This document shows positions 42,242-64,000 of a stretch of DNA of 64,000 nucleotides, in pieces. The translations under genes were made by a program, and so were the position numbers. The notes under the pieces were generated by a model. That model saw only the letters and a list, made by a program, of their open reading frames with translations. It did no database searches and was not told where the DNA came from. The DNA is from Salpingoeca rosetta (taxonomy: Eukaryota; Protista; Choanoflagellata). The stretch covers positions 1,648,665 through 1,712,664 of the forward strand of contig JAWQFM010000013.1 in NCBI GenBank assembly GCA_033442325.1. Reading direction: 5' to 3'. Within the stretch, counting starts at the first letter, position 1. Each line of letters begins with the position of its first letter.

Positions 42242-45200
42242 ATGGACGAGATTGACGCGCGTGGTGTGTCGGCGGGGTTCCTGCGCCGGTTCCTGGAGGA
42301 GGTCAAGGCAAGTGACCCAGAGCATTATGCAGCATTGACCACGAAGGACGTGTGCGACAAGATTGTGGTGCCGCACACGAGCGATGAGCGTGCGATCGAA
42401 GATGTGGGGCACGCGTGCGCGTACGTGGATTTGCTGGCAGCACGCACGCCGCAGGACGTGGCGGCAGCAACCGTGTTTGTCTCGCACGCGTGGCGCTACA
42501 AGCTTGTGGATGTGCTCACCACACTGCTCGAGTTTGCTGACGAAAACAACAGCGAAGAAGATTGCCCCGTCTTCTTTTGGTTTGATCTTTTTATCAACAA
42601 CCAACATGAGGACGTCACTGCCAACCTTCCCCAAGAGTGGTGTGTGCGCGTGTGTGCTTTGTTTTGTGTATGTGTGTTTGTGTTTTTGCATGTGTGTGTG
42701 TGTGCGCGAGTTTGTTTACACTTGTACGTGTGCGTGTGTTTGGTTCAGACGTGTATTGTCACCGTGTTACATTGCCCGCCCGCCCAACACCCCCCCCCCG
42801 TCCCCATTCGCCTTCAGCAACGACCTCCTGCCCCCTCCTCGTGTTCTCTCTCACATACAACAACAACAACAACAACAAACAACATCTGCACCTGCGTGCA
42901 GGTGGAGCACGACATTCAAGGAGTCGATTGCACGGATCGGCAAGGTGGTGCTGGTGCTGACACCTTGGGACGACCCCGTGCCACTGACGCGGGCGTGGTG
43001 CCTGTGGGAAATCTTCTGCAGCATCAGCCACGGCGAGGACGTCACGCTCAGCATCCGCCTACCAACCACGCAGCGCGCCGCCCTGCGAGAGGCGCTGCTG
43101 GAGAGCCACGACGCCGTGACAGACACGCTCGTGCGCGTGCAGGCCGAGCGGGCAGAGGCGTGGAATCCAAAGGACAAGGAGATGATCTTCAAGGCGATTG
43201 AGGAGAGTGTCGGCTTTGGGCAGCTGAACCGTGCCGTGAAAGACCAGATGCGCAGCTGGTGCCTGCGGCAGGTGGTGCAGTTTGTGGAGGACATGGAGGC
43301 GCAGGGCCAGGACCGCACAGAGGCGTTCTCCTCGCTGGCATACCAGGCCGCAGTCGCCATGCGCCAGTTTGGCGACCACGCGCGCGCAGCCAACTTCCTC
43401 GGCAAGTGCCTGCGCATTGAGCTTGAGGTGCACGGTCCCCAGCACACCAACGTCGCCGTCACATACGGGCTTCTCGGCCTCCTGCACGAGGACCTGGGCA
43501 AGTACGACCGCGCCGTGCAGCTGCTCGAGTCGTCGCTGGCCATCCACGTCGACACGGCGGGGCCAGACCACCCGCACGCGGCGTCCGCATACAGCAACTT
43601 GGCCGGGGTGCTGAACAAGCTGGGCGAGTACGACCGCGCCGTCGACCTGTACCAGCACAGCCTCGCCATCAACCGCAGGGTGCACGGGGAGGAGCACCCG
43701 GACACGGCAGGCACGTACAGCAACCTGGGCCTGGTGTACGACAACAAAGGCGACTACGACTGCGCCATTGAGTGCTACGAGCACAGCCTGCGCATCAAGC
43801 GCGCCACGCTGGGCGCCAAGCACCCGTCGACGGCAACCACGCTGGGCAACCTCGGCCAGGTGTTCGAGGGCGCGGGCCAGTTTGACAGGGCCATTGAGCT
43901 GTACACACAGAGCCTGGACATCAAGCTGGAGACGTTGGGCGAGGACCACCCGTCGACGGCAACCGCGCTGTCCTCGCTCGGCAGCGCCTACGACAGCGCG
44001 GGGCAGCACGACCGCTCCGTGGAATGCTACACGCGCTGCCTGGAGGTGTCGCTGGAGGCGCTTGGGCCCATGCACCCGGACACGGCGCTGACGTACGGCA
44101 GCCTTGGCAGCGTGTACCACAGCAAAGGCGACTACCCGCGCGCCCTGGAGTGCGGTGAGAAGTGCCTGGCCATCTTGCGCGACACGCTCGGGGAGCAGCA
44201 CCCGACGACAGCAGCGGCCATGGAGAACCTGGGCCACCTGCACCACACGCTCGGCGACGCCAGCGCGGCAGCAGACCTGTTCCAGCAGTGCCTGCGGATT
44301 CGGCTGCAGGCGCTCGGGCCAAAGCACCCGTCCACGGGCACGGCGCACAAGAACCTGGGGCTGCTGCACCACGCGCGCGAGCAGCACCCGCTGGCCATTG
44401 CCAGCTACACGGAGTGTCTCGGCGTGTACAGGGAGGCGCTTGGCGAGAACCACCCGACCACGGCATCCGTGTACCGTTCGCTGGGGGACGTACACGAGGA
44501 CATGGAGGACTATGGCGCTGCGATTGAGTGCTTCGACAAGTGCCTGCGCATCTTGCTGGCCACGCTGGGCCGGAACCACACGTTTACCGCCGCTACGTAC
44601 GCGTGCTTGGGCCGCGCGCACCAGAGCAACAGCGAGCACGCGGCGGCGGTGGAGTGCATGGAGCAGGGGCTGGCCATCTGCTTGGAGACGGTGGGCGAGA
44701 AGCACCCAGCAACGGCGTCTGCGTACCACACCCTGGGGCGCGTGCATGATGACCAGGGCCGCCACGACCAGGCCATCGCGTGCTTCGAGAAGGACCTGCA
44801 GATATCCATCGACACCCTTGGGGAGGACCACCCAGAGACAGCGACCACCTTGCATGCGCTTGCCTGTGTGTATGACAGCAAGGGCGACTATGCTCGCGCT
44901 GCCCACTATGCAGAACGGAGCCTGCAGATCAAACGCAGTGCATTTGGAGAGGAGCATCTCACCACGGTGTGTAGTTGAGGGAGGTAAAGAGGATGGGGAG
45001 GGGTTGGTTGGTTGTGCGCAGTGAGAAGGGTGGGGGGTTATTGTGTGTGTGTATGTGTGTGTATGTGTGTGCGTGCGTGTGTGTGTGTGTGCGTGTGTGT
45101 GTGTGTGTGTGTGTGTGCGTGTGTGTGTGCGTGTGTGTATGTGTGTCTTGGACGTCAGAAGCCACTGCTCATCCTGATCCTCTTGCCATTCACATGCACA

Positions 45201-62800: not shown

Positions 62801-64000
62801 TGATGCCACATGGGTGAGGAAGTGCGTGAGTGAGTGATGATGATTGCTGTGGATGGCAACACAGTCATCAATCCACACATGGGCACGTAATAAGGTGCAA
62901 CAGGCAGTGACGCAGCATACATGTACATGTGTGCGTGTACACACTCACTCGAGCCATGTGAGGGCCGTGTTGTGCTTCAGCATCTCCGCCAACGCCACAG
63001 CGCCCTCATCGCCGATGGAATTGTCCCANNNNNNNNNNNNNNNNNNNNNNNNNNNNNNNNNNNNNNNNNNNNNNNNNNNNNNNNNNNNNNNNNNNNNNNN
63101 NNNNNNNNNNNNNNNNNNNNNNNNNNNNNNNNNNNNNNNNNNNNNNNNNNNNNNNNNNNNNNNNNNNNNNNNNNNNNNNNNNNNNNNNNNNNNNNNNNNN
63201 NNNNNNNNNNNNNNNNNNNNNNNNNNNNNNNNNNNNNNNNNNNNNNNNNNNNNNNNNNNNNNNNNNNNNNNNNNNNNNNNNNNNNNNNNNNNNNNNNNNN
63301 NNNNNNNNNNNNNNNNNNNNNNNNNNNNNNNNNNNNNNNNNNNNNNNNNNNNNNNNNNNNNNNNNNNNNNNNNNNNNNNNNNNNNNNNNNNNNNNNNNNN
63401 NNNNNNNNNNNNNNNNNNNNNNNNNNNNNNNNNNNNNNNNNNNNNNNNNNNNNNNNNNNNNNNNNNNNNNNNNNNNNNNNNNNNNNNNNNNNNNNNNNNN
63501 NNNNNNNNNNNNNNNNNNNNNNNNNNNNNNNNNNNNNNNNNNNNNNNNNNNNNNNNNNNNNNNNNNNNNNNNNNNNNNNNNNNNNNNNNNNNNNNNNNNN
63601 NNNNNNNNNNNNNNNNNNNNNNNNNNNNNNNNNNNNNNNNNNNNNNNNNNNNNNNNNNNNNNNNNNNNNNNNNNNNNNNNNNNNNNNNNNNNNNNNNNNN
63701 NNNNNNNNNNNNNNNNNNGTGCAACGGCAGTGGCGCAGCATACATGTGCATGTGTGCGTGTACACACTCACTCGAGTGTTTCGAGGGTCGTGTTGTGCTC
63801 CAGCATCTCCGCCAACGCCACGGCGCCCTCATCGCCGATGGAGTTGTTGTACAGGCTGTCAAGACGGTATGGTGGATGCCACACAGGGCGATGATGCCAC
63901 ATGGGTGAGGAAGAGTGAGTGCGTGCGTGCGTGATGATGATTGTTGTGGGTGGCAACACAGTCATCAATCCACACATGGGCACATGTGCACGTGATAAGG
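56884..64000 (-). CDS. ROCO protein: LRR array - ankyrin repeats - Roc - COR - TIR - SAM, 5' end outside the window
   Basis: LRR exons (LWDNSIGDEGAVALAKVLKHNTTL etc.); ankyrin exons LFSACRDGD...DINQHNAQ / GDTPLHVACRHNQPAVVELLLEKGAD / GETPYDVA; Roc KLIFIGQGRAGKTST, HSTHG, KVFDLGGQSTFYIFHPFFLT, VLIVGTFAD; COR CLQFLHLYSMVLFY...VILSPQWAV, FLPEGLF; TIR YDAFISYR...TFVDANNLETG..F...ALQNS...PVVS...DNVLLEW; SAM exon 56884-57168 LIEWLNRHSLLPHVEAALVEHGIDSL...LRASGVAMGPAMKLV. Confidence 0.88.
62413..64000 (-). repeat. Tandem 268-bp exon+intron LRR cassettes (84-nt exon, 184-nt intron)
   Basis: Exons at 62413-62496, 62681-62764, 62949-(63032) and 63772-63855, with near-identical flanking introns. The period is exactly 268 bp for the first three units. 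Confidence 0.93.
63029..63718. other. Assembly gap inside the LRR cassette array (room for about 2 further units)
   Basis: Run of N. The 823 bp between equivalent exon ends on either side is about 3 periods. Confidence 0.95.

Follow-up and report, generated by a model that had tools for sequence, protein, structure and literature searches.

The end of a 64,000-nucleotide stretch of the choanoflagellate Salpingoeca rosetta genome (C13:1648665-1712664; the window herein) holds four adjacent genes that belong to receptor-like families. Gene 1 joins a predicted TIR-fold domain to a TPR array and a PH domain, gene 2 begins with a related domain, gene 3 has the layout LRR-Roc-COR-PARP and gene 4 the layout LRR-ANK-Roc-COR-TIR. 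Contig C13 is 1,733,015 bp long, which puts the cluster 20-42 kb from one of its ends. In our view this is most likely a subtelomeric stretch in which members of lineage-expanded families happen to adjoin, since these families accumulate toward the ends of chromosomes, and not one co-regulated unit; we assign this reading a probability of roughly 0.6. The original prediction, made from the DNA letters, had described a defence island of NAD+-consuming effectors with NLR-like logic. Its anatomy, the enzyme domains of genes 3 and 4 and the NLR-like layout of the Roco genes held up on analysis. The island was not borne out as stated, and genes 1 and 2 matched neither the HET nor the TIR Pfam model. 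The four genes are as follows.

42242..46820, plus strand: gene 1, TIR-fold domain, TPR array and PH domain (ATG at 42242, TGA at 46818-46820)
47328..49201, minus strand: gene 2, PTSG_05783 (100% identity), 483 aa in two exons
49987..56250, minus strand: gene 3, LRR-Roc-COR-PARP (stop at 49987, 5' limit provisional)
56884..64000, running past the window end, minus strand: gene 4, LRR-ANK-Roc-COR-TIR with a weak SAM match (stop at 56884)

Open reading frames and domain matches placed all four genes at the positions and on the strands first proposed, with gene 1 on the plus strand and genes 2-4 on the minus strand. The spacers between genes 1 and 2 (~0.5 kb) and between genes 2 and 3 (~0.8 kb) agreed with the 0.5-0.8 kb given for them, and the UTP20 gene said to precede the cluster was recovered as exons at 32.7-34.3 kb of the window.

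Receptor-like families crowd near contig ends

Profile searches of the 55.4-Mb S. rosetta assembly, to which all genome-wide counts given here refer, yielded 53 matches to COR-A, 52 to TIR_2 and 37 to PARP. By coordinate matching, at least 14 genes were found in which COR is followed by TIR ~1.1 kb on, together with 12 genes in which a shorter type of COR is followed by PARP 1.3-1.6 kb on. The existence of these two gene sets indicates that the effector is swapped on a common Roco scaffold, and on this point the original prediction of a swappable effector holds across the genome. The gene 1 family was counted using a profile, A2, built from an alignment of 64 of its TIR-like domains; this gave 130 exon matches, corresponding to ~65-67 genes. 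A profile of the gene 2 family gave one strong match, gene 2 itself, and one weak match elsewhere, indicating that gene 2 is single copy.

When all family matches were merged into 171 genes, among them ~67 TIR-like-TPR genes and 53 Roco genes, 58 of these lay within 100 kb of a contig end, where 22 were expected. The bias is evident in both Roco sets: a contig end is found within 63 kb for 10 of the 12 Roco-PARP genes, and within 75 kb for 8 of the 14 Roco-TIR genes. Near-identical PARP exons were also observed in three Roco-PARP copies near the ends of different contigs (C20:1226-1228 kb, C24:1201-1204 kb and C2:37-39 kb), which points to recent exchange of sequence among chromosome ends, or to duplication from one end to another.

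Clustering was scored as four genes of these families within 25 kb. When genes were placed at random with each gene's distance to its contig end kept, a four-gene cluster arose in 8.75% of trials, in a count that takes in the gene 2 family solely because it is present at this locus, which flatters the cluster, and that leaves out further PARP-bearing families, which would raise the background. As the families are abundant and end-enriched, and end-distance-kept placements produce such a cluster at this rate, the term defence island was not borne out as stated. Close pairs of family genes within 10 kb showed a mild general excess (13 versus 7.2 expected, P = 0.02), and TIR-like-TPR genes were found within 10 kb of a Roco gene five times versus 2.5 expected (P = 0.11). 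Besides the window, TIR-like-TPR genes lie at a distance of 2-5 kb from Roco-PARP or Roco-TIR genes at C34:393-398 kb, C23:1190-1196 kb, C5:797-802 kb and C28:965-972 kb. Recent block duplication of gene 1 with its Roco neighbourhood was considered and rejected, as the TIR-like-TPR genes at these four other loci are 68-77% alike, and in their domain exons only.

Several observations weigh against crowding as the sole explanation. Nowhere else in the genome do four of these genes cluster as they do in the window, and at least one such cluster arose in just 1.8% of uniform placements (P = 0.018); the probability rises to ~0.09 when end distance is kept. With end distance kept, TIR-like-TPR genes also occurred within 20 kb of a Roco gene nine times versus 4.7 expected (P = 0.04). 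Finally, at four loci, the window and three of the four others, the TIR-like-TPR gene lies on the opposite strand to a Roco gene that is 2-7 kb off. We conclude that the clustering is largely accounted for by crowding of expanded families at contig ends, with a weak residual association between TIR-like-TPR and Roco genes that may reflect some functional pairing.

Alternative readings of the gene cluster

The alternative that survives best, which we nevertheless regard as unlikely, is that the Roco genes serve ordinary signalling. Roco-TIR and Roco-PARP proteins would then sense environmental or bacterial cues, such as prey or signals for mating or colony formation, and cyclic ADP-ribose (cADPR), ADP-ribose (ADPR) and ADP-ribosylation would act as messengers or marks. 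The section text of a preprint on TIR enzymes (bioRxiv 10.64898/2026.04.20.719644) lists TIRs that depleted NAD+ after overnight expression, and S. rosetta does not figure in that list; most of the TIRs tested there did not deplete NAD+, which suits a signalling role more than cell suicide. Roco proteins elsewhere have non-immune roles, with LRRK and the Dictyostelium Roco proteins acting in trafficking and the cytoskeleton. On the other side, dozens of fast-duplicating subtelomeric paralogs, cassette arrays of LRRs and contigs that share nearly identical copies are features seen more typically in recognition repertoires shaped by diversifying pressure.

Less probable again is a true defence island, that is, one co-regulated anti-pathogen unit in which NAD+-derived products or NAD+ depletion act together and the TIR-like-TPR and Roco partners resemble paired plant NLRs. 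That these families are nowhere else in the genome so densely clustered, that TIR-like-TPR genes stand beside Roco genes on C13, C34, C23, C5 and C28, and that close pairs are in excess are all in keeping with such a unit. The frequency of four-gene clusters under end-distance-kept placement, the background that the uncounted PARP-bearing families would add, the finding that the adjacent pairs did not arise by copying of a single block and the low expression of gene 3 argue against it. We give slightly less credence still to the idea that the TIR-like-TPR/Roco pairs in the window and on C34, C23, C5 and C28 are working pairs, and that the cluster is a functional NAD+-signalling immune module in which Roco-TIR, Roco-PARP and NTPase-free TIR-like receptors feed one NAD+-derived signal.

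Gene 3 combines a Roc-COR core with a PARP domain

The exons and motifs assigned in gene 3, listed from its C-terminal end, are given below.

49990..51115, minus strand: last exon, PARP catalytic domain (Pfam PARP 40.5 bits versus 26.7, E = 2.8e-10; Atlas feature score 0.95)
50455-50466 (WHGC), 50362-50373 (GIYL) and 50068-50082 (FEEYV), minus strand: histidine-tyrosine-glutamate (H-Y-E) triad
51482..52078, minus strand: COR exon (COR-A 25.6 bits, E = 1.2e-5, below cut-off; limits taken from a spliced contig)
52358..53300, minus strand: Roc GTPase exon (Roc 29 bits versus 27; P-loop GDYGIGKT at 53166-53189, DFGGQ at 52965-52979)
54552..55900, minus strand: ribonuclease-inhibitor-type LRR exons (54552, 55149, 55547 and ~55826; found by motif scan, LRR_6 match weak)

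The PARP domain that had been predicted in gene 3 was confirmed by a Pfam match above the cut-off and by the H-Y-E triad, and the reading of gene 3 as a PARP enzyme is well supported at the level of sequence. The H (W/F-H-G-C), Y (G-I-Y-L/V) and E (F-E-E-Y/I-V) motifs are kept in 13 paralogous PARP domains. In a profile made from these 13 paralogs the triad aligned with the H, Y and E of PARP3, in a match that was itself weak (E = 0.15), and a phmmer search of the PDB with the gene 3 PARP exon gave no match.

In an RNA contig of a public run, 51116-51481 and 52079-52357 are absent, so that Roc, COR and PARP come into one open frame of 889 codons. Since this spliced contig joins the three exons in a single frame, the Roc-COR-PARP fusion is real at the RNA level. 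In three stranded RNA-seq runs, 14-19 reads each fell on gene 3, all of them exonic and in an orientation that fits minus-strand transcription; expression of the gene is low. The read evidence covers a 3.35-kb stretch of gene 3 alone. No account of a Roco scaffold with a PARP effector turned up in the literature searched.

Gene 4 corresponds to the reported TIR enzyme F2UB80

The assignments for gene 4, again from the C-terminal end and up to its ankyrin repeats, are listed here.

56887..57156, minus strand: C-terminal SAM-like exon (SAM_2 E = 0.007, 17 bits versus a cut-off of 20.5; Atlas features give no clear call)
57306..57977, minus strand: main TIR exon (TIR_2 27.6 bits for the exon and 29.5 bits in the genome search, versus a cut-off of 28)
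57738-57764, minus strand: catalytic Glu, within NVLLEWMAM
58087-58113, minus strand: first strand of the TIR domain, KYDAFISYR, in the preceding exon
58087..59592, minus strand: COR-A and COR-B exon (COR-A 70 bits; COR-B 22 bits, below the cut-off of 27)
59790..60600, minus strand: Roc GTPase in two exons (Roc 28.1 bits; P-loop GQGRAGKT at 60564-60587, DLGGQ at 59790-59807)
60950..61569, minus strand: about three ankyrin repeats (Ank E = 2.3e-10 at 61135-61263; ANK_LRRK2 weak)

The TIR_2 match is marginal because the first strand of the domain lies in another exon. When the TIR of gene 4 was translated with the splice made after KYDAFISYR, it equalled, minus an added start codon, the F2UB80 TIR ordered in the preprint cited above (bioRxiv 10.64898/2026.04.20.719644, Table S4 row 33). 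By this sequence identity, gene 4 is UniProt F2UB80. That table row lists F2UB80 as 1,352 aa with the TIR at 1034-1255, catalytic residue 1118, Active yes and cADPR yes. The preprint text also names S. rosetta among the unicellular eukaryotes with cADPR-producing TIRs, and a figure legend lists the LRR, Roc and COR domains. The enzyme activity of the gene 4 TIR has thus already been reported by others, in a preprint, and the view of this domain as an NAD+-using enzyme agrees with the cADPR product and the catalytic Glu1118 given there. For the architecture as a whole, which had been given as LRR-ANK-Roc-COR-TIR-SAM, we recovered the LRR, ANK, Roc, COR and TIR parts, but the SAM domain was not confirmed at its score of 17 bits.

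Paralogs of gene 4 include a protein that is 92% identical and a DNA copy on C23 that is 84% identical over 4.4 kb. The preprint table (Table S4 row 34) also contains a Guillardia theta TIR, L1IYH1 (1,337 aa, TIR at 1049-1273), with a similar catalytic-Glu motif. As L1IYH1 resembles F2UB80 in length and TIR position, the Roco-TIR layout may occur in cryptophytes as well.

Roc-COR as the likely counterpart of a STAND NTPase

In both genes 3 and 4, Roc has an intact P-loop and DxxGQ motif and is followed by COR. Pfam scans of the submitted open frames of the four genes gave no NACHT or NB-ARC match. Judged from their domain content, genes 3 and 4 are kinase-less Roco proteins that are NLR-like in layout only. 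The proposed logic of a repeat sensor, a nucleotide switch and a swappable effector fits these two genes, which have LRRs, Roc-COR and either TIR or PARP. In bacterial conflict systems, GTPases of the Roc type that come with COR have been described to replace STAND NTPases in rare cases (Kaur et al. 2020, PMC7159879), and a TPR-ROCO-TIR arrangement has been mentioned for a red alga.

By analogy, binding of a ligand to the repeats would alter the nucleotide or oligomer state of Roc-COR. This change would in turn bring the effector domains together and switch on NAD+ cleavage, cyclisation or ADP-ribosylation. The predicted outputs would be a PARP-type ADP-ribosyltransferase for gene 3 and a TIR, for which cADPR has been reported, for gene 4.

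Genes 1 and 2 share a divergent domain with a predicted TIR-like fold

In gene 1, unlike the Roco genes, the TIR-like domain is joined straight to the TPR array and PH domain, with no NTPase in between. The parts of genes 1 and 2 are listed below.

42242-42639, plus strand: gene 1 exon 1, beginning at the ATG
42640-42901, plus strand: gene 1 intron (GT..AG), which splits the N-terminal domain; the frame is kept across it
42242..43330, plus strand: gene 1 N-terminal TIR-like domain, in two exons (FVSHAW at 42476-42493; second motif at 42990-43010)
43350..46200, plus strand: gene 1 TPR array of TPR_10/TPR_12 type (Pfam TPR_12 E = 4e-133 and E = 4.5e-40)
near 44976-45258, plus strand: intron inside the TPR array
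46536..46811, plus strand: gene 1 C-terminal PH domain, last exon (Pfam PH E = 1.3e-8, 35.7 bits versus a cut-off of 25.1)
48956-49201, minus strand: gene 2 exon A
47328-48533, minus strand: gene 2 exon B

Pfam gave no family for the N-terminal 230 residues of gene 1. When the latter half of this domain served as the query, 68 proteins were retrieved, ~40 of which are S. rosetta paralogs; their annotation is 'Mbre TPR repeat protein' or the like, and a PH domain is present in several. Gene 1 scored 205 and 136 bits against the A2 profile and has every residue that is invariant in it. PTSG_05783, the gene 2 protein, was likewise without a Pfam match at a threshold as lax as E = 10. Its residues 1-225 retrieved 190 relatives in an exhaustive HMMER search, and 31 of these relatives were aligned (alignment A1). 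In A1, S39, D49, W189 and E193 are invariant and H40, W42, W141, D143 and C190 are nearly so. The C-terminal half of gene 2 (residues ~226-483, window 47328-48150) has no recognisable domain, with just a chance-level match to DUF4848.

The two families are related to each other. Single exons of gene 1 matched the gene 2 family weakly, and the comparison of family to family was clearer: hhalign aligned A1 with A2 at 90.5% (E = 1.4e-6), with the W-x-D...Q and R-A-W-C-x-x-E blocks in register.

Structure prediction points to a TIR-like fold for both. The AlphaFold model of a close gene 1 paralog has a pLDDT of 91.4, and its residues 63-235 gave two tied top matches at Z 7.5, which is middling by the search tool's own note on values below 8: 7m5h, an uncharacterised Enterococcus faecalis protein, and the SARM1 TIR, the latter with an rmsd of 3.1 over 113 residues. 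These were followed by the MyD88 TIR (Z 7.1), ThsB (Z 7.0), other TIRs and the nucleoside deoxyribosyltransferases, which are related to TIRs. The gene 2 model (pLDDT 87.2) has a TIR-like fold at its N-terminal residues 1-220. Foldseek found nothing for it in the PDB, and the gene 2 family profile had no match there. In a wide structural search (VIA-align) TIRs ranked highest for the gene 2 model (SpbK Z 7.3, Hydra TRR-2 Z 6.2, ThsB Z 5.8 and SARM1 Z 5.6), with deoxyribosyltransferases interleaved among them. In Atlas neighbours from protists and fungi, the gene 2 module is fused to ANK, LRR, TPR, MORN or BRCT repeats. The structural neighbours of the gene 2 model also include one Atlas cluster of fungal HET proteins, with a TM score of 0.46.

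In both models the conserved glutamate of the W-C-x-x-E motif (E154 in the gene 1 paralog and E193 in gene 2) falls within the opening turn of the helix that follows the third strand. Judged by the 'WCLxEL' motif of plant TIRs, the catalytic glutamate of plant and animal TIR enzymes occupies this position. From the position in the models we infer that the W-C-x-x-E glutamate of genes 1 and 2 may correspond to the TIR catalytic glutamate, and use of NAD+ by both genes is plausible.

Sequence comparisons did not extend this likeness to family membership. Pfam TIR matched neither PTSG_05783 nor the 64 members of the gene 1 family, and hhalign comparison of both divergent families with a profile of eight true S. 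rosetta TIRs gave probabilities of 5-17%, which are not significant. HET has been proposed to be TIR-related (PMC4986451). The Pfam HET model matched neither PTSG_05783 (E up to 10) nor the 64 gene 1 family members (E up to 1); a Pfam HET search of the genome was also negative, but says little as the controls gave no match either. For the domains of genes 1 and 2, which had been called HET/TIR-like, the predicted folds and the conserved glutamate support a relationship to TIR, but neither the Pfam models nor the TIR profile gave a significant match. We therefore describe them as TIR-fold domains by prediction, possibly HET-related, and place them in neither family. Self/non-self recognition between conspecific cells at mating or colony formation, as by fungal HET incompatibility genes, is very improbable: the motif pattern of genes 1 and 2 recalls, in our own reading, the three HET blocks, the fungal HET cluster neighbours the gene 2 model and subtelomeric regions such as the one that holds these genes are often polymorphic, but neither family has a Pfam HET match and a TM score of 0.46 is under the usual same-fold threshold.

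Gene 4 has an array of LRR cassettes interrupted by an assembly gap

The N-terminal part of gene 4 consists of a tandem array, with the following limits.

62409..64000, reaching at least window-equivalent position 66591, minus strand: LRR cassette array with a 268-bp period
63029-63718, no strand: assembly gap inside the array, both edges in register with the 268-bp unit on one strand

Each cassette unit is made up of an 84-nt exon, which encodes one 28-residue ribonuclease-inhibitor-type LRR, and a near-identical 184-nt intron. At least nine units were located, at 62.4-63.0 kb, at 63.77 kb and at 65.4-66.6 kb in window-equivalent coordinates. The exon has the phase 1+81+2, opening with one base of a split codon and closing with two, and because of this symmetry the frame is kept by any whole number of units. 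At the upstream edge of the gap ~49 nt of intron remain, 96% identical to the neighbouring unit, and at the downstream edge the exon lacks its first 4 nt. The estimated length of the gap fits roughly two missing units. The first 1,181 bases past the window (window-equivalent 64001-65181) also read N. A similar exon organisation is known from the brown-algal LRR-ROCO proteins, candidate immune receptors of a multigene family with one LRR per symmetric-phase exon, for which exon shuffling is possible (Zambounis 2012; PMC11378527).

Two further features of the setting were observed. A copia-type reverse transcriptase frame lies ~8.4-9.8 kb past the window end (RVT_2 E = 8e-17, RVT_3 E = 8.9e-5), so that a retroelement separates the four genes from the end of the contig. 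Introns and spacers are rich in long (CA)n, (GT)n and (GA)n microsatellites, for example at 51273-51488, 52230-52330 and 53343-53560.

Significance and comparison with known systems

Choanoflagellates are the sister group of animals. With dozens of Roco- and TPR-based proteins whose outputs are TIR or PARP, one of them already reported to be active as an enzyme, S. rosetta would have a candidate pre-animal repertoire of intracellular receptors built on a GTPase and not on a STAND ATPase. As S. rosetta is amenable to gene editing, this idea is testable. Earlier surveys reported no classical NLRs with death-fold domains in choanoflagellates, and a survey of their immunity genes does not mention Roco (PMC6040629). 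The analysis adds the genome-wide family numbers, the bias toward contig ends and the clustering test.

Genes 3 and 4 share sensor repeats, an NTP switch and a swappable effector with NLR/STAND receptors and with the bacterial AP-GTPase-COR systems (PMC7159879). Unlike NLR/STAND receptors, they have no NACHT or NB-ARC match, and the S. rosetta family is eukaryotic, intron-rich, subtelomeric and multigene.

With SARM1, plant TNLs and Thoeris ThsB, gene 4 has in common a TIR domain with a catalytic glutamate, reported to make cADPR. The possible SAM domain beside this TIR recalls SARM1, and the order of repeats, switch and TIR recalls plant TNLs. Gene 4 differs from both in that its switch is a Roc-COR GTPase rather than NB-ARC or ARM-SAM, and its TIR is C-terminal. 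Genes 1 and 2 are relatives of SARM1, plant TNLs and ThsB at the level of the fold only. Like the fungal HET proteins (PF06985), they have an N-terminal module of ~200 residues of a kind that is fused to TPR, ANK or LRR, with a similar pattern of three motif blocks, but they lack a match to the HET model and their structural likeness to the HET cluster is borderline.

The gene 3 PARP domain resembles the ARTD family PARPs in its Pfam match above the cut-off and in an H-Y-E triad as found in PARP1-3 and the tankyrases. It differs from them in having no WGR, PARP regulatory, WWE or macro domain, in its fusion to LRR-Roc-COR and in its distance from solved PARPs (best E = 0.15). The brown-algal LRR-ROCO genes, too, are an LRR-Roc-COR multigene family with one LRR per symmetric exon; in S. 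rosetta the introns have been co-duplicated. The algal exons are 72 nt rather than 84 nt and the algal proteins end after COR with no effector. To this plan the S. rosetta genes add ANK repeats and, at the C-terminus, either a TIR domain followed by a weak SAM match or a PARP domain.

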